Program-made: the position numbers and the translations under genes
The notes under the pieces: model-generated
Database searches by the model: none
Told to the model about the DNA's origin: nothing
What the model saw: the letters and a program-made list of their open reading frames with translations, nothing else
In this document: piece after piece, positions 16,500-63,922 of the stretch
Position numbering within the stretch: the first letter of the stretch is position 1
How the letters are laid out: every line of letters begins with the position of its first letter
Source of the DNA: Bispira polyomma
Taxonomy: Eukaryota
Assembly (NCBI GenBank): GCA_965649765.1
Contig: OZ287755.1
Span: 22,692,001-22,756,000 of the forward strand
Direction: 5' to 3'
Length of the DNA stretch: 64,000 nucleotides

Positions 16500-19130
16500 A
16501 ACTTTGACATTTGCATCAAGTTAGGTGGTTTGTTTCAGTTTCCTGGGGGTGTGTAGAATTTTCCCTTCAATCCAACAAATCCACTCAGACCTTCAGATTT
16601 CGTTAGATGAAAAAGCTAACATGCATTGGAAAGCAGCCTTTATTGCACAACAGAGATCTAGGAAAGCCCTCAAGTCTAATCTATGGCCTTCCTGTTCTTG
16701 TTTTCATAGTTTTCTACAAATCATGCAAAACTACTAATTTATTTGCCATCAGTGTTAATGCCAGTGCACATGAAATCGGATATATTTGTGAGTTGTTTTC
16801 AGTAGGGCAGATTGCTGAAGCTATGTATGTAAATGCATTCCTGTTATTAGGTACATATTAATCAGATTACGACATACAATGACAAAGTTACATCTGAGGG
16901 CCTTGTAGAAACAATGTGTGGCATTACTAAGTGGAATCAGGTAAAGAATTCTCACAGCAGTCTTTCATGTATTTGGGAAATAAAGACAGGGGTAATAGTG
17001 ATAGACCTCGGTGACAAACCACAACTTTGTCTGGTTTTAAATTACTCTCAGAGGGGATCTTGGATGGAATTTACTCGCTGTAAATAAAGTCAGAATGTGT
17101 GAACTTGATTACTCCTACCATGTTACAAGTCCTTAACGGGGACATCAAGCTTTCACTTAATTCTCTGCCTCTTCTACAACTGAATATATCTTTCCTTTTA
17201 GATTTTACTGTTTTCCAAAAGTAGTCAGAGAATATAACCATTGTTATACATATAATGGACAAAATGGCTTGCAAAACAAATTTTAAAATATTGAGACATA
17301 CAATTTCATAGGTAATCATATTAGTTAAGTGGACTGAGATATACAATAGCAACTTAATTGTAACAACTTGTAAATGTTATATGCAGTTTTAGTTGGCATA
17401 AGATATCCACTGTCACAGACGTCTTTCATTTCTTCAGCAACACAGACAGGATAATAATGTTACACCATGCCTACACTTTGGGGGACACACCAAACCTTTC
17501 TGAAAACACTGGGTGTTTTAATTAATCTTAGGGGGGTTATTGAATGTAAGTTAGCAGCTGTAAATACAAGGAAATGTGTGAACTGTATTACAGTTACCAC
17601 ATGCCAAGACATTAACAGTGTCATGTCAAGTCTTTTCACTTTATTATGTTCCATATTCTACTCTGTGGAAATAAAGGGTACAGCTATTCTATCCACTACT
17701 AACTACTTGGTTCTATACCTTTGTTAATTATTATTGTAGAATATATCTCAGTGGCATTATAATCTGTCATATGAAAATTATTACTAATAATCTTTGTAAG
17801 GAATGTAGTATAGAAAAATGTGTAGCTCAGAAATGGCAGAAATTGCCAGTCCATGTGATGTACTAATCATTAAGTATAAAAAATGTGCAATCCTTGGTTA
17901 CAGTGGTGATATATAATCCGCAGGTATAATATGATAATCCTTGGTTACAGTGGTAATTTTATATAATCATTATGTGCTTACCATAGTTACAGTGAAAAAG
18001 ATTTCTAAATTTTTAAATGAGTATCATAAATGGAATATGGCCTTTAATATCTAATGATTTGAGTGCTAAAACAGGTTAGGCCTTGTTTTTGGCCCTGTGA
18101 AGGTATGCAGTGCCCATGTTGACTGTCTCACAGCCATAATATTTATATAGCGACAAATATTTATAAGAGCATCATACCAGAGTTTGTGTATTTGATTTAA
18201 CGTCGCTTTCAACACATTGTATATGTTATATAAGAACGGGTAATTCTAGTGGTGGAGGAAACCAGAGTGTACTAGTTGGTCAAGATTCTGCACTGCAAAC
18301 CAGCAAAGTGCTAACTTACCTATTTAAAGCCTCAGTCAAGATTCGAACTGGAACCAAAGAGGTGGGAGGTAAGTGTGTTAGCACTGCGCCATCGAGGCCC
18401 CCCAGAGTTTGTGGAACTATTTAATAAAGGTTATATTTTCTCAGTGATGCCATAGTGTTCTAATTGTAGTGTAAAAGAACGTGTGATGTCCAACTAAATG
18501 TAGCAATAAAATCATATTTTAGTATAACGTTCACATTTGATTGTTCAACTGGCAGCCTATGGTGAAAACATGTATCATTGTAAGATTACGTGGATTTTCA
18601 TACAAGTATTCATTCATCCTAAAAAGACAAATTTATGTGAAAACGCTCAGAAGAGGAATGTTAGTATGAATTAATACGACACTCTCTACATTGGAGAATG
18701 GAAAAGACTTTGTCATATAGAATTTTATGATAACAGGTGTTAAAATAACAACATGTATGTAGTTTTTCCTTTTCATGTTTGAAGTGTGTAAAATATTGAC
18801 ATTAACTGATATAGTAGTTACACTTAAAGAATAGACCTCCTCATCCATCATTTAACACTGGAGGTGTATCAGTTGGTCTATATTTGTATGTAAAATATAT
18901 CAATACCGATCAGACAACCCATCAGACAAGTTTAAATATTGATAAGGTAACATAATACGCAGGGTAGAATTTCATAGTTTATTCACCTTTAATGCTATCA
19001 AGTTTGCAATGCAATGTGATATTTGGTACTACATGTCCTTTTTTAGACATTCAATTATTTTGTAACTTGTTCAAAATGATAAGTGTTTTTACACAATAAA
19101 GAAATATGACACCCTTTGACTACAATCCAT
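16500..19130 (-). pseudogene. Decayed coding-like sequence, paralog unit 1 of an unidentified tandem family
   Basis: Collinear DNA homology to 26720-29320 and 32705-35310. Shared peptide remnants (HP/SITPxRxIK, VYHYYP, MKDVCD, NEYLY..N.TMIHV, HYGITEK). Many stops and frameshifts. Confidence 0.5.
18189..18401 (-). mobile_element. tRNA-derived SINE (family B; shares 3' body with family A)
   Basis: Head GGGGCCTCGATGGCGCAGTG...GTTCGAATC, body shares GGAGGAAAC...AGTTGGTCAAGATTCTGCACTG with family A, 12-bp TSD CCAGAGTTTGTG at 18177-18188 and 18402-18413. Confidence 0.85.
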
Positions 19131-20715
19131 ATGACTACATTTGCATATGTACATATATATATATAGTGTTTACAAATATACAACAAAAAAAAAACATTAC
19201 AAAAAAACACAAAGGCTTCACAAAAAGGAAAAAGACAAACTCAGAAATAAAGATAAAACAGTACTACTAATAATACTATCATTTTTATATATACACGTAG
19301 GCCACCAAGTGTTACACCTCCACTGGAATAGGAAGTTTATTATGCCGAAACTACTGATCTGATGCCATTACCTGTATTTATATCTAGTTGTTTAAGACAG
19401 ACAATTCAGTCTTATTGAATATTTTACCAAACAATTCTTTGTAGAAAGACTTGGTTAAAGTGGTAATATTTTATCATACTTAGTTACTAGAGGTACCATG
19501 TCAATGTCTTATTTTAACATTATCAGTTAATTTGATTGTCACTATCTAGATTGGTTTAACTTAAATCAAGCAACCCATGTACACACAAGCGGTAGAATAA
19601 CTAAGACAATTTTATCAACAAAAATATTCATTTGATATTTGTTGTGTCATTAGGGAAAGAAATCCTCTTCAAAAAAAACTTCTGGCATTTCAATAATCTT
19701 CAATATCAAATTATGGTTCACACTTTTTATTATAAAATCAAATTCAAAGTTTTCTGGTAGTTTACATAGTTGTTTTATTTTAGTGGTTCAAATCTGTACA
19801 TTCTTTTATCTGTTGGTCTTTAATAAACATCAATCTGTCTATAAGTAAGAGTCAGAACAGAGACTCAGTGGCTGGCTGTTGTCTCCCATTTTATTTACCA
19901 ACACATGACATTTTTACTGTAAATGAAACATATACTGTAAGCCTGATTTAGCTTGAATAGAATGATTGTAAAATTAGATGTAGAAGAGGGATGTTATTAG
20001 GAATCAATAGGACAATCTCTATTTTGGAGTGTGGGAAGGACTTTGTCAAAGAGAATGTTAATAAAAATGGTAAAATAATGTCACAAATGTAGTTTTTCCT
20101 TTTTAGGTTTAAAGTGTGTAAAATATTGACAATGGACGCATTAACTGATACAGTTCCCAGGAACCAGACATAGGCTAATTAGCCATTTACTTATCAACAC
20201 AGAAAAAGATTGCGGTTCATAATTTTATTAGTAGACTACAGGGTTAAAACTACTATGTACATTTTTTTATTAAGAGGAGGGGCATAAGGTAACCTTAAGA
20301 AAGCAAAAATTTTAAGGTCACCATAACATAAAGAATTGTCAAGATGAGGTTACCCTAAGTGAGATTTCGAATTTAAGTTAGGGTGACCATAAGTTAGTAA
20401 CAGAATAAGGTGACCATAACTTGAATTTTAGTTTAAGTTTGAGAATACTATAAATTTAAGTTTAAGTGAATAAATTAAATTTTTAATGAAATTTAAATTT
20501 TAAAAATTTTGGCAATTATAAGTGAAATTTAAATTCAAAGATTTTGAAAGTTAGATGGAGGAGTACATTATGTGCTTCCCACAGGAGGGTGACCTTATGC
20601 CCCAATATGCTGTGATAATTTATTTTATTGACATTTATTTTGCATGTTTTTAAACATGTAAATTTATAAAGTTTTAGGTGAGAGGAAAAGTCCAAACCAC
20701 CAAGCCCAAAAGTTT

Positions 20716-21701
20716 TTAGGAAGTATTTTGTAGAGCAGCCGAGAAAGAGTCAGCCACTTGGGGGCCAACCAAAGCGGAATCAGTAATATAACGCCAGATG
20801 CAGTCCGACGTCCAGGTGCCATGTCGCTGAATATCCTGTAAACAAACATTATTATTGAACGCAAACGTGGCACCTGAACGCCGGAAAGAATGAAAAGTTA
20901 AATTTGAATGCTGAAGATTCAGCATGTGTAATAGGTTTTTAAATGTCGTCTAACTCGATTATCCGTCATGGGAACCCATGAATCTTTTACTTTATACTGA
21001 AATAGTGGGGCATTCCTGCCAGAAGGAGACACAGCCAATACAGCTCTTAGAGCAGCCACAGGACATAATTCTGAATGAGGAAGAGCAGGTAAAGAAAGTA
21101 ACTTAACTGCATCTTTGGTTTGCATTGTCTTGCTCCATTTTACTACTAACAGTACATACCCAGGCTTAAAAAGCACGTCTCCCCTGGCCAGATGCTTAAG
21201 TGGAGAGAATGCTGCCATGGAATGAGGGCACAAATTTGAGAGACGTAAAAAGCTAAAAAAAACTAGTAAGATACATAGCCTTAAATATTAGGCCCATGTA
21301 GGTTAGATGACATTTTTTCACTAAATTTAACATTAGTGGAATATCAAAGACACTCTTTAACTTTACTTGCAGAGGCCTGTTCACTAGCAAAGCCCTGTTA
21401 TAATACGAGATCCTTGGATCAGAAAAAGGTACAACGTCCATATGAAACAGTATACACTTAGCTTTTACAGCTGATAGATAGTTTGCAATCTGAGAAGGAG
21501 ACACACAGTTAAAGCTCAAAAATTCAAGAAAGGCAAGTAACTGAAACACATTCTCCTGAGATTTAGGCCAAGCCATAAAAATGGTGAAGGCTGAGAAGGT
21601 CTTAAACATGCTGTTATCAGCAGATGACGTAGAGGGAGCCAGAGCTGTATGCATTCTTCTACAAGCAAGACTGGTCAGCAAACTTTCCACAGAACTATGA
21701 C
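20716..21701 (-). pseudogene. Tyrosine recombinase of YR retrotransposon 1 (frameshifted)
   Basis: ORF pieces 21253-21690, 20919-21233 and 20716-20925 carry RLSNL (between pieces), KWSKT, LCPV, HSFRRSGAT, HGTW, WRY, the R-K-HxxR-H/W-Y catalytic set. Confidence 0.92.
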
Positions 21702-21729: not shown

Positions 21730-23957
21730 TTAGATATCCGTATTCACATGTAACAGGGCTTCATCAGTGGGAAGCCATACCACTGGGCCCGCCCATTCAT
21801 GCAGCAACTGTTCATTCAATTTGGTTCTGTCCCACCTGGACAGGAGGTCTGTGACCTTATTTTTAACCCCAAGTATGTGTATGACCTTAACGTCGATATC
21901 AAATCGGCTGGCCCACAAGTAAATATTTCGAGTATAAGTTGCCAGAATTGGGTCCTGAGTACAACCACTGTTTAACACACTGACAACAGCCTGGTTATCA
22001 CATTTGAATAAAACCCTCTTTCCTTGCCAGAGTTTAGCCCACAATTTGAGGGCTACTAGAATGTTAATCATTTCCAACGAGGCAATATTATGATTTGCCA
22101 TTTCTTTGGGAACAGATAACTTATATACCTGGCCAGCATAAATCCCGCCCATACCATTTAAACATGCATCTAGCTCTACCGGAGCATCGATAGGTCTATG
22201 GACAAAGAAACTAGTGCCATTAAATTGCTCCATGAAGGTACAAAACCAGTTAAGATCCCTCTTAAAGTCACTTGTTAGTGAAAACCTTTTTCTGGTATGA
22301 TTATCTCTCAACAATTGCAACATTCTATTGAGATATACTCTAACATATCGAATACATTTTGAAATATATAAAAGGGAGCCAAGTAATGATTGCAACTCTC
22401 TCTTAGTGAAATTCTCTTTAGTGCACCACATTTTACATAAATCTCTAAGTTCAGTCATTTTTTCACTTGGAATAGAAGTGGTAAAATCCACAGTATTGAT
22501 TAAAATGCCAAGACATATTACTTCAGTGCTCGGGGGCACTAATTTTTTAGGGCTAACAGTGAGACCCAATTCCTTCAGCAAGGCCTGAAGCCTGTTGTAT
22601 ATATTTGTGATTTTGCTTGGGAGCGCCACACATAAAAAATCATCAATGTACGCGTGTATATGACAGCCTTCCTGAAGCATGATATACCTTACTGCGTAGG
22701 AAATTCTCTGAAAAATAGTGGATCCGTTCTGGAACCCGAACGGAAGAGACCTATCCAAATAGTAAGAATTCCATTTCAAACCAAATAAATCAACATCCCC
22801 CGGATAAATAGGCACGTGCCTGAATATCTTGCAACCTTTGCCTAACTTCTGAACCTCATTAGTAAGACTATCCACCGACGGATAAGACAGTAAAAATTTT
22901 GTACCAAGATATTCAGTGGGAGAAGCCTCTGCATTCACTGTTTCGCCAATTGGCCAGCTAAGGTCCACAATGACCCGCCTATTGCTGAAGCTGGATTTAT
23001 TACCGTCATCATAGGGGAAAAATGCATTTTTTTTATTGGTGGATCCTTAAAAGGGCCCAGAATAGCACCATATTTGCACTCCTCATTTAAATACGTATCA
23101 ACGTGCTCTGGGAAATCTAGAGCCGATTTGTGATTACTGCCATCTGATTGGCTAATATTCGAGGGGGAAACCGTACTTGACCAATAAGGGAAGCTGCCAA
23201 TCCCAATAAGATTTCAAGTAGTGAAACCACTTTTCAGGATTTAGTTGCGACTTAACGGGTAGCTGCAATCCCTTAAAATTGTACCTCCCATCTTTTCTCA
23301 GTATGTGATGCAATTTTAAAATGTCAGAACTGTAATTTGTGGCTCCACTATCCCACACCCTACAGCACAAGTCTGAAAGGGGAGTAAAACCGTATTCGAC
23401 CTTATTTTGGCTACGCCATTTGCAATGAGTTGTATTGCTCTTAGCTTTACACAGAAGTTCAGTGCCAGCGCATATTTGTCATTAACCATATGGTCGTCAG
23501 TATCACCACAAGCTACAGCGACACAGCCAGCCTTTGCTTGCTTTTTCAGTGTGAGCCCAGCCTCGCCCTCCCCAGTGCTTTTCCTCCCCCCACTAGTTTT
23601 GCCCTTGTGAGGGGTGGTACTGCAGGGGTCTGGCCCGAACCCCACCATAGGAAAGTTGTGACTTTTTTGTCTAGCAAAGGTGCGACTTTTAATGCTTTGA
23701 ACCAAATTGCCAATTTTACCACAAGTAGGACTAGTATTGGGCCATCCACTTGTTGACTCAGATAATTGCCTACATTCAGATCGCTTTACTATGTCACTAT
23801 AACTCTGGTTATACTTCGTACCACGATAGTATTTACACATTTGCCTAACAATATTGCTGTCTAGCAATTGAAAATCCTGGAAACCAGTTTTGAAAATTTG
23901 CCTGGAAAAACTTCTACTATCGCCCACTGCATTACTGCAGTGGGCTCTCAGTTTTTT
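21730..23957 (-). pseudogene. Pol (RT-RNase H) of YR retrotransposon 1 (disrupted N-terminal half)
   Basis: ORF 21730-22968: DLSWP, LPFG, YIDD, CLGI, ELQSLLGSL; RNase H ELDAC, IASLEM, KCDNQAVV, N..TDLLSR. Upstream pieces 23152-23370 (YWDWQLPLLVKYGFPL) and 23316-23975. Confidence 0.93.
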
Positions 23958-25801
23958 GACTGTTTTTTGGTACAATTAACACTCCTGTGCGCCCCAGCAC
24001 ACGTTTCGCATATATGCTTAAAGAAGGTATTTCCACTTTTGTGGCTAGACTGAAATTTGCAAGAACCCTCTTGATAAAATTTTCAATTGGCCGAGCCCTG
24101 TTTCCCTATTCCTGTGCTTTTACTCCCACCCCTCGTGAAAGTACTACTGCTACCACTACTTGATACATGCTTCTGGGCATGGGCTCGACGCAACCTATCT
24201 AGTTTCTCGACCTCTGTCCATTTCAACTTATCCATTTCCATGGTGGTTAACACCACGGCATGGCAGGCTTTGGCGGCCTCCCAAGAAAAATTCTGGGAGT
24301 CCTCTATTAAGCCTGCCATGTAATCCAACATTAGTTCTTTTATTTTCGGATTTTTTTCATCTTGTATAATGCGGGTAAACCCACACACCCACTGACTAAG
24401 AGAAAGATCGTCATAGCTAGGTCGCGTTTTAAAGTTTCCGGACAGCATTTTCTGACGTGATTCTGGGGCCATTCGACCACTCTCTTCACTACAACGTCAA
24501 CGCCACCCCCTCTTTGTGATTTGATCTTAGCTTTTTTTTGATTCTCGTTTAGCTCCTTAAGTTCGCTAAGCCGTTGCTCGACCTGACTTTGGATGCAGGT
24601 ATTTGTTTTCAGAAATTCAATAGTCGGGACCACACTGTTCACGATAATAGCACTGATTTGATCCGTATTTGCACTGGCAACAGTTTCGTCAGTGTTTAAG
24701 CTTTTACCATTCTGATTTCTACCGGCAATTTCAAAAGAATTTTGACCTTTCTCACTACAATTTTTGGGTGAATCCTTGTTACATATAAGGACATTGTGAT
24801 ATGTTAAAGCACTCTGCTAGAGTGATCTATTTATAGATTTGGGGAAACCCCTAAGCTTCTAGAAGCTGTTTCTATTTTGTTTCTGTTATTAAAGTTGTGT
24901 TCATATGTATATCTCATCTCTGGAATGTTCTAGCGATTGCTTACATATTCTAGAGCCTTCTCTAGTAGTTGTATATATAAGGGTTGACAGCCTGGCCACA
25001 GACCAGAGTTAATTGAGTTGAGGTGCTATTTGAACTGCTATACTGTGAAACATTTTATTTCTTTTCCTGAGGATATAAACTGATTACTACATATGTTTTT
25101 GTGGTGAACTCATTGGAGTGAAGTAGATAAAAGTTGTGGATCTACCAGAGATTGGATTTACTGCATATTGGATATTGTTTGCATCCTGGACTGGATAGCT
25201 TAGTTGTGCAGACTCTCTGGATATATACATTTTGTGTTCGTGGACACTGAACGGATAACAGGATACAGGCATTGTGTGGACACAGAGCGGATCTCAAGAC
25301 AGATTGCTGGATACAGTGGACAAACTTGTTTAATTGTTATTTATGTGGACAGGACTGTGGTCAGGTCAGATAGGTTTCATTATTGTATTATTGTGTGAAC
25401 TATTAAGGGTATCACCGTTGACTGTAATTCCGTAATTGTTATTTTATTTGTTAAATAAATTTGTTAAGTGAAACTTTTTTTCTTTTCCTGTTACAACCTC
25501 AAAGCAACCGGTAATTGCTCCCGCGCTTGCTCCCGTGACCGTAACAATCCTTCACCAAAGCCGCCTCAGTGAGGAGGACACGTTTGTCCAGCCAATTCAT
25601 CATTTCACCCATGCTCTGCAATTGCAGTAGAATTTTATTAGAAACCTCAGCCAAACCGCTGGGAGCAACCGAATCCGCCCCTTCAACTAACTCGTCCTCG
25701 GAAATGGACTCCTTGTGTATTACACCATTACATTTGCTACCGACTGGTCTGGCATGCCTTTCAAGACATTTTGAACAACCATACACTTTTACCCGTGGCA
25801 T
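23948..25801 (-). pseudogene. Gag-like ORF1 of YR retrotransposon 1, interrupted by a solo LTR
   Basis: N-terminal CxxCxxxH...GxxC. Removing 24777-25546 plus one ATCCT rejoins ...ALVKD-SPKNC...VNSVVPT in frame. Core WPQNHV/RPSYDDLSLSQWVCGF. C-terminal *KFYQEGSC...SH...HICETCAGAHRSVNC zinc fingers (first Cys mutated to stop). Confidence 0.85.
24777..25546 (+). mobile_element. Solo LTR (copy 2, 770 bp) nested in gag
   Basis: TGTTAC...GTAACA termini, 5-bp TSD ATCCT (24772-24776, 25547-25551), TATA-like TATATATAAG at about 24972, AATAAA at about 25454. Confidence 0.92.
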
Positions 25802-26719
25802 TCTGAGAGACAGTTACTCTAACACACGAAAACGAATGTAAAATAAACATGTAAAACAAATAAGATAAACCAAGACTCTCTGCCAAAACCTCCAGTGTAT
25901 ATATTTAATTCGAAGTTGTTTCTCTGCTGACGGTTGGTGTAAAGAAAGAGATTTCAAATTTCCTTGGTTTATATAGCGAAACGCAATCAAGTGTGACCAA
26001 AAGACTAGTTCCCCGAACTGAAACCACCAACACTATGGCGTTGCCTTCTATAGTGGTGGCTTTTTTCAGATATTAGTTACACTAAAGAATAGACCTCCTC
26101 ATCCATCATTTAACACTGGAGGTGTATCAGTTGGTCTATATTTGTATGTAAAATATATCAATACCAATCAGGCAACCCATCAAACAGGTTTAAATAAGGT
26201 AACATACAATTCCATAGTTTATTCACCTTCAGTGCTATCAAGTTTAAATGCAATAAAGGTATATGTACAGACCATGCATTGTGATATTTGGTACTACTTT
26301 TGTAGACATTACATTTTTGTAGACAACATAATATCATAATAAAAAAATTAAAAACAAAAAGCTTTTGTCCTTACATTTCAATTTTTTTGCAATTTGTTCA
26401 TAATAATAAGTGTTTTTCACAATAGAGAAATCGGAAGGACATCTCTTAAACACAATCCATCAGTTTTTGTTCTTGTTGTCTAAACAATAAACAAATGATT
26501 TTATATAAAAAAATCGTTTTTGACATAGTTAATTACACTATAAATTAAACATAACATATTTAGTGTTTCCTTTTTAAGTGTTCATGTAGTTTCCTTTTTA
26601 AGTGTTCATGTAGTACTGAGGGAATATACACAATTTTGTGTCTATACACACAGATCAGATTTATACAAGGCTACATATGAAGACATATAATAGACTACAA
26701 CGTTTCCAGTACAAATTTA

Positions 26720-29320
26720 ATGCTATTGACGCACAATTTTATAGCAACTTACATGTGATGTGCATGTTATCTGTGGTTAGTATTTTGAATGAAGTATTAA
26801 CTTGATTATCACAGACTTTCTGTTCTTCACTAATCCACATGGGGTAATGGTGATGAACCCTGTCTAACATATCGGTGACATGTCAGACTCTTCTGAAGAC
26901 ACTGCCAGTGTTCTAAATGACACTCGGGGGAGTTATTGGATGTAAGTTAGAACCTTGTGAACCAGAATACTACTACAGTGCAAGACATTAGACGTGCTGG
27001 AAAGCTTTTTGTTAAGTCTATGCCTCGTTCTACTCTGTTGGATGGATAGATAGACATTTACTTTCTATCTTATACTTAAGGTGTTATCTGTTGAATCTGT
27101 TTAGAGGTAAACACTGGTTATCATTAACATCTCAGATCGACATGTGCTATATCCTTTTGCATTAATTACAGCTGGTCTTACTATTTGTTGCTATAACATT
27201 ATGTTGTTCGTGCAATTTGCTAAGCTAAGCATAATTGATGGATTTTGTAGTAATAATACAAAACTAATTTCTAAAATACTTATGAATTCAACCTATGGCT
27301 CCATCACATCTATATGTAATGAATTTTGTCCTTTGATAGATCAAAATATGTCTTCTTATGAGAGTTATTTTGTCAAGTCATGATGAAAATATTTTTGTTA
27401 CTTTTATTACAGAATGTGTATTGAAATGAAAAGCATCAAATGAAAAATATTATATAGAATCTTTAGAAGCAATTTTTGTAGAAAGAGCTGTATTTTATAA
27501 ATAACAGCAATTCCAATGCGGTAATCATTAGGGTACAATGGCAAAATGTTTGGTTACAGTGGTGATATTTAATCATAAGGTTATATAAAAATGATATGTC
27601 AAAAAATTACATGTAAACCTCAGCTTTATCATTTTTATTTAAAGCAACCCCCATTCTAATTATTGTAATCAACATTAGATAAAAAAAATAAAGAGGAGTA
27701 GATTTGTCATTGCTGAGCTGTGACCATGGTTTTGAAAATTAAGTTTAGCTGAATGTATTCATGCATAACTACGGAAGCCTATACAGCTCACACATTGAAG
27801 AAAAAAAATTATCTTGTAATTACAAGATAGACCTATCTTGTAATTACAAGATGACCCTATCTTGTAATTACTAGATAGACCTATCTTGTAATTACAAGAT
27901 GACTCTATATAGTAATTACTAGATAGCCCTATCTTGTAATTACAAGATGACCCTATCTTGTAATTACTAGATAATTTTGTTTTTACTGCATGAGCTGTAT
28001 AGGCTTCCGTACATAACATAATATGCTTATATCTACAATACATTTCAAAGTGTGCTCTACCCTTACTACTTGAATGAGTATAGTCAGTTAAATATGCGCA
28101 TATATATGATGAAGTTCTTTTTAATAAATTGGCCTTTTGTCTTAAACTTTAGTCTTAAAACTTAAATATGTTCTTAAAAATAAAATGATTGAGTCTTAAA
28201 ATAGACTAGGCTTTTTTGCTTCTCTGCAAGTTTGCAGAGGCTCAGGTTGGTTGTCTATCATACATAACACTTAGAGCAACAATATAGCCAGTCTGGAGTT
28301 AGTCAGACTGTATGGGACAGGGACACTGGTTGATTGATTACATCAGATCCTGTTAGGGCTAATGCTGTGACATATTTTGTTTATATATGTCACAGACTAT
28401 CCACCTAACTGGCTGTTATCTTTTGTGCTGTATGTGATGTATGAGGATGGCTGCTTGTCTGGCTACTAACACTTTATTGGTGTGATCTGCTGTAAACAGA
28501 GACACTGCCTTGGATATTTTCAGAAATGTTTTCTGACCTTCTCTGAGTAAACATCATAACTTGATTTACAGAACTGTTCAAAGTATGTTGTATTTTTCAG
28601 TGATGCCATGTAATTGATCATAGAGTTAAAATGTGGTATTTATTGGGTACATATTTTTATGCTTGATATAAATACATTTGGATGACACCAGCAATACTGA
28701 AGGCACAACTTTGTGAAAAAGTCACATTCAATTTCAAACTGATTAAAATCTGTATACGTTTAATTACGCGTGATACACGCATAGAAGTAAGAGCTTTTTT
28801 CCTGGCTCAGATAAAACAACTTTCTTACCTCTGTGACTATTTTATGCTGAATTAAATATTAATTCAATAAATAATTACACTGATAAAACTCTATAACAAA
28901 AATTAGCTTGAGACAAGGAGGACCCATAGAAAGAGTTTTCTAAATCTACATGGACATGTAGTAAACAGTGAACACTTTCTGTAGGAATAGGTGATGCCTC
29001 CTCAGTCTTCCTAGTTACATGTTAGAGAAAGAAATCTCTGAGAAAAAAGATAATAGACCCACTCAAGCTATAAGAATGAACATCTTCTGTGTCACTGTTA
29101 GCTCCGGAAGATCTTGTCAACGTAGGATGACATCCTGATGATATCTGTCCAATTAGTTGTAGTAATGGAATCATATTTAGTGAAATAATCATTTATAGTT
29201 TGTTCAACTGATGCCTGTTGTGAAACGTGTATCATTGTTTGATTGTATGCATTGTAATATAAGTATTCATTTGTTCGTTTATTCATTAATCTAAGAAAGA
29301 TGAATATATGTAAACAAGCT
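26720..29320 (-). pseudogene. Decayed coding-like sequence, paralog unit 2
   Basis: Collinear with units 1 and 3. ORF remnant 29098-29286 (RTNEYLYYNAYNQTMIHV...FTKYD), plus VRWIVCDI, YVTALALTGSDVI, LHIDVMEP. Confidence 0.5.
27810..27973. repeat. 24-bp tandem repeat (about 7 copies) built on an 18-bp palindrome
   Basis: Unit contains ATCTTGTAATTACAAGAT, a perfect self-complement. Confidence 0.9.
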
Positions 29321-56915: not shown

Positions 56916-59900
56916 TGAATTATAGTTTATCAATTATGCTATTCTGTAGAAGATGCCTGGTACCAATAAGGAATGATAAAATCTTACATTCCAATACAAT
57001 TACTGCTAAATGTCAGTAAATGTATCAATTGATTAGTTGTGGTTACTGTGTAATTATCAAAACAATCATACACCTCGGGATTACCTAGAATTGGTAATAA
57101 CTAGCATTGATATTATATAAACAGTATATCTCTATTAACTGACTTTCACTTCATTGACAGTGCAGTTTGTGTTTTTACTTATCATTAGAAATAGCAGGTG
57201 TTAAATTGAAGATATTTATGTGTGTAGACAATCACAAAATTTGAGTGAGTACTTATTTAGTAGTACTCTTGCAGTAAATAATAATTTTTTCAATTCAATA
57301 CTGCGCACTTCCAACATCACTGTTATCAAATGCGCTTTGACATTATTACCTCAGCCTAAATAGTATTATTTCTATACTAGATGCCACTGTCTGGTGTTAT
57401 TCTCTGGTTTCTGGCCTTGTTGACCTGTTAACCTCTCCATATAATGGCAAATGCATTTTACCTCATTCATTCTATTGTACAAGAAAACTGCCCCTCTCTG
57501 CTGCCTCCCAACTACCGTGCACATGATCACTGTAGTTTAAATCCCTTTCACCTACTATCCTTGAACCTTGTTTTCGACATCAGGTTGATACAGCTTTGTC
57601 CTTGAAATATATAATTTTACACTGGCTAAGATCTACCAGTACCAGAAACATTTATGGGCAGAATGTTTGATCCCAGCCTGTGGTGCCTAGGTACACAATT
57701 AAATAATTTGTTATAAACCAATTAAGACTGCTACTTTAGTGCTAAAATGTTAGGGTCTCGTGATGATGTGTAGAGTGCATGTAGGCGACAACATTGGGGC
57801 ATTGATAAATAGTGACACTCTCGCTTGTCTACAGCCAATGATTCTGTAGTGGGTGATGCAGGTCTAAGTCTTAGAAAACAGTCCAATCAAAGAAGCTAGT
57901 TATCACTGCCATATTAAGTGGAGAAAATGTCTGGATATCCAAGTGCCAGGTAATTGGTTTGTCCCAGACAGCCTCCTTAGAATTCTGGCCCACCAGGCTG
58001 TCACGAACAACACTTTTATAAAGATGGGAGATCTCCTCACACAACTAATTAAATTACGGGCCTATTTATGAGGATGGTGCCCTAGCTTATGTGCTCCTCA
58101 GCAGGTTTAACTATGTCAGCAGTGTAGATTGACACTCCGACGTCACATGCTCTAAAAGAATATCTCAGTTTGTTTTAAATATGATGGTCATGCGATAAGG
58201 TGGGGTTATTGGTCAGCACAACGCTAGGCACTCGGTGTAATATTTGGTAACTCTTTTTTGTGCTGAAATGTTGAATTCATGACTCCATTAACTAACTATG
58301 AGCATTTCATATTGGTTATTTGTGAATGTAAAACAGTCATTCGTTTTTAGCACTACAACAAAATGAGAATTACTGAGCTTGAAGTAATCTTCTGTATACA
58401 TTAAATATTTTAGTGTGTTAGTGTGTTATATATGTCAGCATCTTATTAAAAGACATAATATATACTAATCAACTTACTTTTAAAAGCTCTAATGGGTTGA
58501 TCAACATTATAGACTATATTAAAATTGTGACAAAGTACTATTTATTGTACCTTAGATAAATGAATGGGGTAAGATGTTATAAGTTCAAGTAAATTTGCAA
58601 TTAATCTGAACCATCACAATGCATAGTCCATCGTGTTAACGGGACATGTTAAAACCTAAAATATGGAAACTTGGATGTCCATAAAATAAGCAAAAGTTAA
58701 AATGAGCTGTGAGTTTATTTTATTGGTAAAACTGTAAACAAGTTACAAAACTATAATAATGTGGGGATTTTCCTAAGAAAACAACACACACAAGGAATGT
58801 AGCTACAGAAAGATTGTAAAGATAACACTTTTAATGATAAATGATAGGTACTGGAAAGTTTGGATGTTTTTCTAAAACTAATTGCCCAGTTTATTGATGA
58901 TTGAGTTCCATTTAATTGTCACAATGTCATGATAGATGCTTCCTTTATTTTGTCTGTTTTTAGTCCGTTCCCGTTTCCCCCTCTGAAAACCTCAGGTGGA
59001 TCCCATAATTCATCTTTGCTCTGCTTTTTCAGTGCTGCTTTTTAACTCGTGTTATTTGTTTATTATTTCATCAGAGTATTTTTCATTTAGCTGTAAAGCC
59101 ATTGCCACTGGCTCTCAAAGTAAAGAATATTAGAGTATGGCCAAGAGAACTCTCCTCTATCTGGGACAATTGGGAAACCAAGAGTTAAGGCTCCAATCCA
59201 CTGCATCTTGTATAAGCCTTATGTATGCTATAAGGTTTATTGTTTGACTATTTAACCGTTACAGGCTGCTAAAATGAAGCCTTAATATATCTACAGAATC
59301 AGTGCAATGTTATCTTGGCCTACTTTGCGAAAGACTTTAAAAAGTATAATAATATTTAGACATACATTGTCATGTCACTGTGGATCCAACAAAGTTGATT
59401 AATAATTAATTAAATAATTAATTAATAATACTTCTATTAACAATCTAACCTTAAATCAACCTATTTTTATTTTAAACTCTAGTATATTTTGTTCATTTTC
59501 CCCGGCACAAAATAGAATGTATGGTCTTCTGCTAAGTTTATATCAGTTTACCCCAAAAAATTAGAACTTGGATGGTCTCGAGAGAATGTGTTAAATGCTC
59601 ATTTGCATATATTTCACCAGATCATGCCCAGGATATGCCCAGTTTATACCCAGGATATGCCCAGTTTTTACTCACAAGTTTATGACCAGATAATTCCCGT
59701 ACCATACCAGATCTAAGCAGTTCATTACATGTTTATGCAACATTTGCACCAGATTACACCAGTCCTGTCTGGGTCACACAATTTCTGAGCAGTTTATTCC
59801 CCGTTTAAGCCTCGACCACATCCTTGGGTCCAGTTTTCTCAGATGTGTTTTTAGAGCCGACCACCCAAGGAAGTTTTTAACGGTTATAGAACACAAAGGT

Positions 59901-60797
59901 GTGAACACCACATTAGTTTGCAACAACTATGTCAGGTACCAAGTAACACCTTAATAGTGTACCCCCCTCCGTCCATGCCACCCCTCCCCTTCTAAACCTA
60001 GACATATTGCTGGCTAAGCTTGTCTGTAATGAGTTCGACTTACAACATGTGTTGACATAACCTGTCAAACAGATAACCAGGGCCTGCTCTTTCTACCACT
60101 CATTTCCCCGGTAGCAGGCTAAAGGATCCGAGGTCATGAAGACGAGGTAAGTAAACACAGAATGCGGTAATTTATTTATTAGACTAAATGTTAGAACCTA
60201 CTATGTACATGGTGACTTAAGGTCACCTCAAATAAAGTTAAAACAAGATACTTAGGATGACTTAAGGTCACCTAAAGTAAAAAAATTTAATTTAGGAATA
60301 ATAAATAAATTTAGCTAAAGGTCACCTTTAATTAATTTAAGTTCGTAATTCCCGAACCAGAAAGATTTCGAAGATAAGGTGACCTTAAATCCAATGGAAA
60401 AAATTTTGAGTAGAAATTAATTTTTAATGTAGCTACTGTACTGTAGCAATACTTGGCGTACCCAAGTGTTTAAGTTGAAACTACAAAAGTATTTAAAGTT
60501 ACCTTAAGTATGTAGCTACTGTACTGTAGCTAAATAATGGGATCATAGCCATTTACAGTATAATAATTTAGACTTCACATAGGCATACTTAATAGAAGAG
60601 CAGACCGAAGTCAGTTTAACAAGGTATAATTACACAATACTGTTAAGCTTAAGCAATAACTTCAGTTTTTATGACAAAGGTAATATGTGAAATGAATGAT
60701 GACTAAAATTACGTAATTGTTTTACATAACCATTAATTATTACAAAAGAGAGGAGTAGATTTAAAGTACAACCAGCCAAACCCCAATGAAGTAGGAG

Positions 60798-61832
60798 CTA
60801 GGAGGTGGAAGGCAATAAGTGATGTCTAAAGGAATCAGCTACCTGATTACCAGCGTCCACAGTATCAGTAACATATCTCCAAACGCAGTCCTACGTCCAG
60901 GTGCCATGTTTTTGAATGTTTTGAATGCTTACATTATGGTTGAAAGCAAAGGTGGCACCTGAACAAAGGAACGCGTGGAAGGTGAGGCCAGAATCTTGCA
61001 GTTTGAGTTTGAGCAATATGTCTTTAAAATGGCGACGCACTCTGGTGTCTGTGAGCGGAATCCAAACATTGTTAACCTTAATTTGGAACAATGGAGAGTT
61101 AGGTCCCGAAGGGGTGAGCCTCATTAAAGCCTTCAGTGAATCCACAGGGCACAACAGTGAGCCAGGTAACCGGGGAACAGTGAGTAATTTAATTTGGTTA
61201 TTACTTTGCATGGTTTTGGACCACTTGATAAGGATAACGGCCTTATCAGGGTGAAAAAGGACATCAGCTCTGGCTAGATGCCTAAGAGGAGAAAATTGTG
61301 AGACAGAGTGAGGAACCAGGTTTGAGAGTCTAAGAAAAGAGAAAAAGCTAAGCAAGTATAATGCTTTAAATACTAAACCCATGTAGGTTGAGTGTGACAA
61401 AGACACAATATTTTGCAAAGTTGCAACATCTATAATTCTCTTGAGTTTGACTTGAAGGGGGGTGGAAAGTGGTACAGCCTTCTGGTAATAGGCTATGCGC
61501 GGGTCACTGAAGGCCTGAATGGGAACATTATGTACTATTAATTCAGCCTTGATGGCAGACAGATAATTTGCCATATGAGCAGATTTGACTACATTAAAGT
61601 GTAAAACTTCTAAAAAACATAATATATGAAACGCAGTCACCTGATGTATAGGCCAATCCATGAAGACCATAAAGGCCAAGTACACCCGAAATATGGCTCT
61701 GTAAGACCTGGCAGTGGACCTGCAGAAGGCCAGGTGGAGCTTTTTAGTAGCATTGTGATACAGTTGTTTTTGCAAAGGAGTCTTATCTGAAATACAGGTT
61801 GGTATAAGGAAGACGAACTTACAATTTGACAT
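60798..61832 (-). pseudogene. Tyrosine recombinase of element 2 (catalytic HxxR lost, premature stop)
   Basis: ORF 60891-61832: FLRLSNL, KWSKT, LCPV, HAFLCSGAT (versus HSFRRSGAT), HGTWT then a stop. The frame continues DCVWRY... to a stop at 60798. Confidence 0.92.
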
Positions 61833-63922
61833 TATATTGTGTTATCTAGTAGTAAATGTTGGTCAGTCACAGGGCACCACTGCACCGCACCTACAAGTGT
61901 ATGTAATTTAGCATGGTTCTGTGTAGAATTTTCCCATCTGGACAGCAAATCTGCAGTCGTGTTGTGGTCACCTAATATATGTATAACTTGTAAGTCAATG
62001 TCATGATGGCTAACCAGCATAAAGATGTTACGTGAGTACAAAGCCAGGATACTATCTTTGGTACGACCATTGGTAAGTACACTAACCACAGCCTGGTTAT
62101 CACATTTTATGAGCACTTTCTGGCCTTGCCAAAGGGGCCCCCACAGTTTTAAGGTGACAAATATGTTCAGCATCTCCAGGGAGGCAATATTAAGGTTCTG
62201 CAATTCATGGCGTAGACTTTATTACCAAAAACCCCCCCATGCCTGTAAGACAGGCATCCAATTCTACAGTGGCTGTAATGGGGTTATGGTGGAAAAAAGA
62301 AACACCATTGAATTTTTTCAGAAAGGTATGAAACCAATTTAAATCTTTCATGAATTCAGTAGAGACTTTGAAAGTTTTTGCCTTATAGTTACTCCTAAGG
62401 AGATGCAACATACGGTTCAAGAAAAATCTTGAAGATTTAACACATTTTAACACGTAGAGAAGGGAACCCAATAAACATTGGAGTTCTCTTTTCGTACAAT
62501 GTTTCTTTCCAGCCCACTTGTCACACAAGGCTTGAATAGTAGTTAATTTTTCCTCAGGAATAGAAGTAGTGAACTTGACCGTATCTATGACTATACCAAG
62601 ACAAGTGACACGCGTGGCAGGAGGGACTAACTTTTTGTCACTCAAGGTGAGACCCAATTCTGCCAGAAGGCTTTGCAATCGCTGGTATGTGGTATATATC
62701 TTAGACGGAACCGAGCAACAAAGGAGATCGTCGATATAGTTGAGGATATGATGACCTTCACCCTTCATGATATATCTGACCCCATCTGAAATTCTCTGGA
62801 ATATGGCCGAGCCGTGCTTGTAGCCAAAAGGGAGGGACCCGCCTACGTAGTACCCATCCCAATATAGCCCCAGTAAATTTAGCTCCTTTGGGTCCATAGG
62901 CACGTGTCTGAATGCACGACTAATGTCTGCTTTAAATATGAGAGAACTTCTACCCATAGCAAATACCTGAGCTGTTATAGTGTCTATAGACGGGTAGGTC
63001 AATAAGAATTGTCTATCCAGGTAGGAATTTGGACACACGGCAGAATTCACGGAGTGGCCTTCAGGCCAGCTTAAGTCAATTATGACACGACGGTTGGAAG
63101 AGCTAGACTTGTCGCGAGTCATAAAAGGGGAAGTATGTAAATTTAAAATTGGTGGCACATCAAAGGGACCAAACATGGCCCCTAATTTACACTCTTCATT
63201 CAGGTAATGCGTGACATGGTCGGGGTACTGGTTAGCAGAGGAATGATTTTTAAGATCAGACTCAAAGTCGCCCCTGGCACTACAATCGAGAGGAAAACCG
63301 AATTTAATAAGCAAGGGGAGCTCCCAATCCCAGTAGTCCCTCAAATAAGCAGCCCACACTGGAGCATTTAGTTGAGAAGCGACAGGGATCTGCAGCCCCC
63401 GGTAGTTAGGGCGGCCGTCCTCCTGCAAACACTTGTGAAGTGCAAAAACATTAGTAAAACTTCGTTTCTGAGCATTATCTGAAAGTTTTTCACCCCAGGA
63501 TGACAGGGGAATAAAACCAAATTTTCCACTGTTTTGCACGTCCCATATTTTAAAAGTATCACACTCTTTAGCATCATTAAGTCTTTTGCGCTTATCAAGT
63601 GAGCGACACATGTCCAGAACATACTGATCGTCAGTTAAATTATTGTTTGTTTTCGTTGGGTTTTTCTTGGGGGCTGACACCTTTGTATTTCTATTAATTG
63701 TTTTCTTTGTTGGCACCCCAGTTCAGAAAAGGGGGCCTCTAGACAATCACCCAAATTAGTGTCACTTCCCCCCTCCCCACAAGGGGTGTCTAGCATTTCA
63801 TACTGATTGGAAAGTGGTAATTGAAAACCTGTGTCAGCACTCGCAGGTTTATTCCCTCCCTTTCTCAACAAAAGCCTGTTGGCATGTTTACACTTAGTCA
63901 TTGGATTAAGAGGGCTGGACAC
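61832..63922 (-). pseudogene. Pol (RT-RNase H) of element 2, frameshifted
   Basis: ORF 62205-63716: YWDWELPLLIKFGFPL, RRVIIDLSWP, KADISRAFRHVP, LPFG, YIDD, ELDAC. RNase H continues in 61832-62203 (IASLEM, KCDNQAVV, NTTADLLSR). Confidence 0.93.

Follow-up and report, generated by a model that had tools for sequence, protein, structure and literature searches.

A conserved palindromic box in the B repeat of Ngaro-like tyrosine-recombinase retrotransposons

The window analyzed here comprises 64,000 nucleotides of the Bispira polyomma genome (assembly GCA_965649765.1, contig OZ287755.1, positions 22,692,001 to 22,756,000 of the forward strand). It carries, on the minus strand, two Ngaro-like tyrosine-recombinase retrotransposons of the order DIRS, which we call elements 1 and 2. 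Beside the recombinase gene of element 1 lies an array of six short palindromes, proposed in a previous sequence-only reading of the window to be a conserved cis system, made either of recombinase or Gag binding sites or of a folded scaffold that replaces terminal repeats. What, then, are these palindromes, where do they sit in a complete element, and what could they do? We found that the palindrome (hereafter the box) is genuine: it is a cis element conserved in retrotransposons of a known kind and, judging by the conservation of its sequence, is under selection. As it lies within the terminal repeats of an element group both in this genome and in at least one other species, we regard it as a conserved recognition or control site.

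The box and its conservation

A motif scan re-found the GGTNACC cores at 20288, 20316, 20348, 20382, 20409 and 20588, with spacings of 28, 32, 34, 27 and 179 bp. The symmetry described for the array also held on the window sequence: the outer copies form an extended inverted pair (20279-20294 and 20588-20603 are complementary at 15 of 16 positions), an inner inverted pair surrounds AGATTTCGAA, and the spacers between the cores are AT-rich. Its placement in the 3′ untranslated region needs a strand to be correct. The array does adjoin the recombinase stop codon, but because both elements are on the minus strand it lies 3′ of the recombinase open reading frame (ORF) only in a minus-strand reading. 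As had been claimed, the same motif is arrayed in the diverged element 2, which has five boxes; most other untranslated sequence does not align between the two elements, the boxes and one 13-nt word beside them being the only parts that do.

When the window was searched for the 13-mer TAAGGTNACCTTA with up to two mismatches, 19 matches were obtained against 4.6 expected, the largest count in shuffled sequence being 10. Eleven of the 19 are clustered, six within 20285-20597 and five within 60218-60506. Tandem Repeats Finder did not report the boxes as a tandem array or minisatellite, the sole tandem repeat in the array region being an 18-20-bp AT repeat at 20450-20535. Rfam covariance models gave no match in window 19900-20900 at E values up to 1, and bacterial promoter and terminator scans returned nothing relevant.

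The box, TAAGGT-S-ACCTTA, is a 13-bp dyad-symmetric site with 6-bp halves and a 1-bp centre. A position matrix built from 39 boxes of nine families is symmetric on reverse complementation; 36-38 of the 39 boxes retain GGT and ACC, and the centre is C or G in 33 of them against a background of 31% GC.

To follow the box into relatives, we used the element 2 recombinase in a protein search that returned 366 relatives; the 120 listed all come from European Nucleotide Archive (ENA) assemblies. Ten relative loci were examined, nine from ERZ22147071 and one from ERZ25073805 (L046; L numbers are our locus labels). The ERZ22147071 recombinases are 45-58% identical, and every one of these elements holds, immediately downstream of the recombinase stop, two to seven GGT(C/G)ACC cores that share the flanks seen in the window. 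In the loci that have two copies of the B repeat (described below), namely L043, L047, L048 and L051, the cores occur within both. The spacers are unrelated. Atlas neighbours of the recombinase are eukaryotic, with labelled members that include molluscs, chordates and fungi.

The enrichment is strong and confined to one compartment. In the B repeats of 10 families we counted 29 cores, where 1.14 were expected and the maximum in 1000 dinucleotide shuffles was 5, and words derived from GGTSACC lead an unbiased ranking of the k-mers common to B repeats. Box density per kb is 7.15 in B, 0.89 in A, 0 in U and 0.04 in the coding body (28 kb of coding sequence). Genome-wide, 5146 perfect boxes were found versus 36 occurrences of a reversed control word, and 1632 close box pairs versus 58 for the control. 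Among 33 distinct B copies from the family of element 1 (family 1), the box columns are 98.3% conserved compared with 93.9% for the rest of B, a value reached by 13 of 5000 random placements. The proposal of a conserved cis feature thus stands, since the box recurs in diverged families and in another assembly, is restricted to one compartment and exceeds the conservation around it. The array stretch is present in 33 of 33 distinct family-1 B copies, so that the motif is neither missing from most family members nor an inserted miniature inverted-repeat transposable element. In the young family-1 copy L033 the core of box 4 is changed to GGTAGCC and is lost.

We found no published account of a box array in Ngaro, VIPER or DIRS elements in a search that did not take in the primary Ngaro description, Repbase or Dfam. 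In metagenomes, box pairs were found in at least 118 stretches, those listed being mostly unrelated 21-bp coding repeats or high-GC bacterial sequence, and none of the 79 loci examined contained a homolog of the recombinase or of reverse transcriptase (RT). One metagenome contig, L091, labelled human gut, was excluded from all analysis. In many contigs of a single metagenome series (L054-L131) the box word turns up again within an in-frame tandem repeat of 21 bp, which is unrelated to the retrotransposon.

The array within the split direct repeats

A query of 581 bp around the array yielded 336 candidate copies in the 1.04-Gb genome, and the 40 that were scored are 90-96% identical to it. Several family-1 copies are paired about 1.4 kb apart, and in five loci (L031-L035) the stretch equal to window 20151-20699 is present twice per element, with 96.7-99.6% identity. 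In L031-L033 the first of these B copies is immediately followed by 145 bp that correspond to window 25905-26050, and this A segment recurs with 100% identity at the 5′ end in L033, the sole locus read through that end. On the element strand the layout is A1 - Gag - RT/RNase H - recombinase - B1 - A2 - U - B2. Split direct repeats are present in L031-L035, L008, L010, L016, L022 and L027 and, among the relatives, in L043, L047, L048 and L051.

The array is located inside the 551-bp B repeat. It is therefore part of a terminal repeat and no replacement for one, and the suggestion that it stands in for terminal repeats fails, other family-1 copies carrying the split direct repeats in full. Both window copies are without A2 and B2. 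Among 30 family-1 loci we observed three forms: the full element, sixteen A-body-B copies without A2-U-B2 (the window copy included), and solo A-U-B copies (L006, L015 and L028). Element 1 is a derivative without A2-U-B2, and its missing split repeats are a property of that copy, not of the family. By analogy with solo long terminal repeats (LTRs), the A-body-B and solo A-U-B forms would be the expected leftovers of recombination between B1 and B2 or between A1 and A2.

The split direct repeats of Ngaro elements have been described as A1-(ORFs)-B1A2B2 (PMC9210276, PMC8547959). The elements studied here share with them the gene order, a B1 that follows the recombinase ORF at once and abuts A2, near-identical B1/B2 and A1/A2, and solo derivatives. 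They differ in that a unique non-coding segment, U, of 0.6-1.9 kb (about 710 bp in family 1) separates A2 from B2 in every complete element seen, the ERZ22147071 elements included. U has a GC content above that of B, no ORF in common and no similarity between families. We rejected U as a coding or conserved segment. A comparable short derivative is SIRE, an A2-30 bp-B2 form of VIPER (PMC6681497). The solo A-U-B copies of family 1 have the same make-up, although U is about 710 bp here compared with 30 bp, and the likeness concerns element structure, not the boxes.

All B repeats have a common order of features: a G-rich start, the boxes, TGTA-N-ATA, AATAAA, CCGCA(A/T)T, a GT-rich stretch and a GGAACTG-type end that abuts A. 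The start is a G-rich TTGGGGTTTGG-type word just after the recombinase stop (window 20692-20699 and 60776-60786; L043-L051). A starts with TGGGGG in the ERZ22147071 elements, and G-rich start words mark the 5′ borders of both A and B repeats. From its motifs, the tail block (TGTA-N-ATA, AATAAA, CCGCA(A/T)T) suggests regulated 3′-end formation within the repeat; TGTA-N-ATA itself has the form of a Pumilio recognition word. B thus looks like an LTR-type repeat with a putative polyadenylation signal, and if so, the boxes would be present in both the transcript and the cDNA. The family was not found in sequencing runs recorded as RNA; the three runs that hold it consist of short contigs of unknown kind, with many diverged copies and no ends, strand or informative joints. 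In L043 (6381-6393), L049 (4521-4529) and L050 (4316-4324), nuclear-receptor-like words occupy one and the same place in the tail, some 40 nt ahead of the end of B.

The site of insertion was approached through an empty-site paralog in the window (Table 1), which shows a conservative exchange between ACT(A/G) and TA without duplication of the target site, at a single locus whose paralogs are only 80-85% identical. The insertion target matches the B-A junction of other copies at five of six bases. The element ends are GGGAACTG and TAGAAGG, not boxes.

Protein binding, strand pairing and other readings of the box

Dimer sites usually take this form, a palindrome of odd length whose centre is free or S. 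A hairpin cannot arise from a single box, which would leave a loop of 1 nt, and most close pairs in the genome sample have an identical centre base and are for that reason imperfectly complementary. Conservation at the level of the sequence, together with dyad symmetry, is the signature of a dimeric duplex-binding protein. We tentatively favour, at a little less than an even chance, a reading in which the boxes are putative binding sites for a sequence-specific dimeric protein that would recognize the duplex box, within the LTR-like B repeat and upstream of a poly(A)-type block. Such a protein could be encoded by the element, either as the recombinase, perhaps extended by a zinc knuckle at its N terminus, or as ORF1, which is rich in Cys and His and has a coiled coil; it could also come from the host. 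Lying 130-450 bp from the B-A junction, several boxes could act like arm-type or subterminal accessory sites, with B abutting A at both the internal and the circle junction. The protein loaded on the terminal repeat may then organize circle or junction processing and integration, or may control expression.

The mechanism may be protein binding or strand pairing, and we kept pairing as the main and a strong rival, possible if the less probable of the two. Here, box pairs would form stems in the genomic RNA or in first-strand cDNA, or would link two RNA molecules, with a role in folding B or dimerizing genomes for reverse transcription, in template switching between B1 and B2, or in packaging. 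Several observations weigh against protein binding and fit pairing better. Every B holds at least two boxes. The 5′ boxes tend to have a C centre and the 3′ boxes a G centre, an order seen in most families and also among close pairs in the genome sample (C..G 11 versus G..C 1-2), although same-centre direct pairs, with their centre mismatch, are the commonest there (about 33). Three box pairs (L051 113/204, L048 125/284 and one in L047) carry compensated changes through which self-symmetry is lost and mutual complementarity kept; those of L051 and L048 are homologous and so probably represent one event. L046 has no exact core yet keeps the outer inverted pair, identical in sequence to that of element 1, so that only the outer stem is retained. 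In the predicted fold of element 1 the boxes pair 1-6, 2-5 and 3-4, and in element 1, L033, L043, L047, L048, L049 and L051 the boxes mostly pair with each other, but in L050 they do not. Scored against shuffles of the spacers that preserve the boxes (element 1, L043 and L047-L051), structure other than that of the boxes reaches significance in element 1 (z -2.6 for the sense and -4.0 for the antisense strand), in L043 (z -4.8) and in L048 (z -2.3 / -2.6), but is marginal in L049 and absent in L047, L050 and L051. Single-stranded cDNA intermediates are used by DIRS-1, for which priming from a 3′ hairpin has been proposed (PMC7192593). On the other side, a pure stem needs neither a fixed sequence nor self-symmetric arms, yet both hold across families. 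General complementarity of the box flanks was rejected, the ungapped average being 3.1-3.4 of 10, near chance; changes of the G-U type within boxes have no clear strand bias (6 sense versus 5 antisense); and covariation across families is unscorable, as there is no alignment of the spacers. A combination of both readings is conceivable, since a C-box paired with a G-box recreates the same duplex. In this combination, which we consider unlikely, the boxes would be arm-type recombinase sites read as duplex in two states, either double-stranded DNA or a C-box/G-box pair in single-stranded first-strand cDNA. The recombinase would assemble on the folded single strand, much as attC is bound by integron integrases and the attP of CTX phage by XerCD. 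Recognition could fall to the zinc knuckle at the N terminus of Gag, provided that a spliced Gag(N)-recombinase fusion exists. If true, this would mean an attP-like architecture with defined protein-DNA contacts in eukaryotic tyrosine-recombinase retrotransposons.

That the boxes are host transcription-factor sites, of the nuclear-receptor extended half-site type (TNAAGGTCA), with B serving as a germline or embryonic enhancer, is equally unlikely in our estimate. Mammalian transposable elements that carry nuclear-receptor sites are known, and each C/G-centred box does contain RGGTCA on one strand, preceded by T-T/A-A. RGGTCA occurs 36 times in 5.4 kb of B against 2.6 expected, with 13 of these outside palindromes; TGACCT is the only 6-mer present in all 10 families; and the tails of L049 and L050 carry TCAAGGTCA, that of L043 a DR1-like GGGTCAAAGGTCA. 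However, the half of the box beyond the contact of a monomeric receptor is equally conserved, a T before GG (TGGTCA) recurs in element 1 and L045, and the centre is A or T in six boxes. In the sequence outside palindromes, CA comes after RGGT 13 times and GA 9 times, about equally, so that the strand asymmetry of a receptor site, which far prefers AGGTCA over AGGTGA, is missing. We think it quite improbable that the boxes have no function of their own and are by-products of template switching or of local inverted or tandem duplication in an AT-rich repeat, carried along by successful lineages. Box number (2-7) and spacing (27-179 bp) do vary widely, local duplications including boxes are seen in the element 2 family, L045 and L049, and the excess of direct pairs fits duplication; but the same 13-mer is kept in more than one species where recombinases are 45-66% identical and spacers do not align, the boxes are restricted to B, and they are more conserved than the rest of it. 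Least probable is the strong form of the earlier proposal, in which recombinase half-sites were put at about 13 bp: that the array is a scaffold replacing terminal repeats, or that the boxes are recombinase crossover sites. Half-site arithmetic looked plausible, and no second A or B copy lies near element 1 in the window; yet many family-1 copies have A1...B1-A2-U-B2, and the elements end at GGGAACTG and TAGAAGG, away from the boxes. The core sites of loxP, FRT and dif consist of two inverted 11-13-bp arms around a 6-8-bp overlap at the recombination point, and known tyrosine recombinases make 6-8-bp staggered cuts, for which a 6+1+6 site is too small. With half-sites of 6 bp, a centre of 1 bp and element ends 130-450 bp away, a classical crossover site is unlikely. 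This distance weighs against a crossover site, not against accessory sites.

We also compared the boxes with the nearest known systems. Several short sites within a few hundred bp of a tyrosine-recombinase crossover point are also found in the arms of lambda attP and the accessory sequences of Xer cer/psi. These lack dyad symmetry, and what binds them is a separate N-terminal domain or host proteins, whereas the boxes are dyad-symmetric putative sites. The 12-bp motifs of En/Spm TnpA and the subterminal hexamers of Ac/Ds resemble the boxes in that many copies of one short motif, in both orientations, lie near an element end and are kept among relatives. Those motifs come from DNA transposons that move by cut-and-paste with a DDE transposase, whereas the boxes are found in a retrotransposon and are themselves palindromic. 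Integron attC and CTX phage attP are folded single-stranded substrates of tyrosine recombinases, and their hairpins contain the crossover site. The box array likewise has imperfect inverted repeats that could fold into a duplex site, and single-stranded cDNA is on record for DIRS-1 (PMC7192593), but the element ends lie elsewhere than the boxes. As with the dimer-linkage palindromes of retroviruses and LTR retrotransposons, the boxes are short self-complementary words that would be in the genomic RNA of a Gag-encoding retroelement. Dimer-linkage sites, though, are even-length, perfect or loop palindromes in the 5′ leader, while the boxes are in the 3′ repeat and leave the centre unpaired on self-pairing.

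To our knowledge, little has been established about cDNA priming, circle closure or recombinase substrate choice in tyrosine-recombinase retrotransposons, and we know of no experimentally defined cis element in them besides the internal complementary region of DIRS-1. The box offers a concrete handle: it is short, kept across families and species, in a defined compartment of the terminal repeat, and present in thousands of genome copies. It is also a simple marker by which B repeats and solo derivatives of the clade can be annotated. Should its partner prove to be a host factor, the box would reveal a way in which these elements draw on host regulation.

The host elements and neighbouring features

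The assignment to Ngaro-like elements is based on gene content. In both window elements, as in L043, L045, L048 and L051, the order on one strand is a Gag-like ORF, RT/RNase H and the tyrosine recombinase, and both window elements match Pfam RVT_1 and RVT_3. The recombinase DNA of element 1 is about 66% identical to that of element 2. The recombinase ORF of element 2, which has a premature stop, gives no Pfam match itself; it is 45-66% identical to proteins with a phage-integrase domain. The recombinase of L045 matches PF00589 at 33.3 bits (cut-off 27.1) and also PF13495, the SAM-like core-binding domain. The methyltransferase-like domain that marks DIRS1 and PAT is absent between RNase H and the recombinase: there is no room for it, because the RNase H ORF of element 2 ends at the recombinase start (61832), and Pfam detected no extra domain, though it may lack a model. 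ORF1, which matches no Pfam family, combines a CX2CX3HX7C knuckle at its N terminus with a coiled coil and, towards the C terminus, a Cys/His cluster.

Element 1 is decayed, with a broken recombinase frame and a foreign insertion. This insertion, from another repeat family, is 94-96% identical to an inverted copy at 12804-13303, 12 kb away. Element 2 terminates near 60100, and no repeat partner for it was found within 56000-72000.

Table 1 Positions of the boxes, repeats and coding frames in the window and in related loci
Feature	Position	Strand	Details
Whole array	20279-20603	-	bracketed by the extended inverted pair
Box 6 (element order)	20285-20297	none	perfect TAAGGT-A-ACCTTA, 0 mismatches
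Box 5 (element order)	20313-20325	none	1 mismatch
Box 4	20345-20357	none	2 mismatches
Box 3	20379-20391	none	2 mismatches
Box 2	20406-20418	none	1 mismatch
Box 1 (element order)	20585-20597	none	2 mismatches
B repeat, element 1	20151-20699	-	551 bp long when intact; begins 17 nt past the recombinase stop, ends in GGGAACTG
Conserved B tail block	20209-20261	-	TGTACATA 20254-20261, AATAAA 20224-20229, CCGCAAT 20209-20215; aligned across 11 B repeats
Tyrosine recombinase frame, element 1	20716-21690	-	three pieces: 20716-20925, 20919-21233, 21253-21690
RT/RNase H frame, element 1	21730-22968	-	Pfam RVT_1, RVT_3
Foreign insertion in element 1	24778-25545	none	about 770 bp; not in other family-1 copies
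ORF1 segment, element 1	25499-25801	-
ORF1 segments, related loci	L043:1292-2305; L048:1546-2544; L045:1100-2221
A1 repeat, 5′ end of element 1	25905-26050	-	matches A2 directly after B1 in L031-L033
U segments	L033:3714-4419; L043:6594-7714; L048:6661-8534; L051:6609-7394
Empty-site paralog of the element 1 insertion site	18649-19130	none	compared with 19982-20131 and 26070-26460
B-like untranslated region, element 2	60100-60797	-	boxes 60218-60230, 60263-60275, 60317-60329, 60375-60387, 60494-60506
Tail block, element 2		-	TGTACATA 60202-60209, CCGCATT 60161-60167
Coding region, element 2	60891-63716	-	recombinase 60891-61832 (premature stop), RNase H 61832-62203, RT 62205-63716

Two further repeats lie in the window. 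Beside the end of element 2, a repeat at 59528-59881 has 2846 first-look candidates in the genome, with 75-81% identity. At 27786-27997 there is a separate array, with a 24-bp tandem period, of 20-bp perfect palindromes (ATCTTGTAATTACAAGAT), which are unrelated to the boxes.

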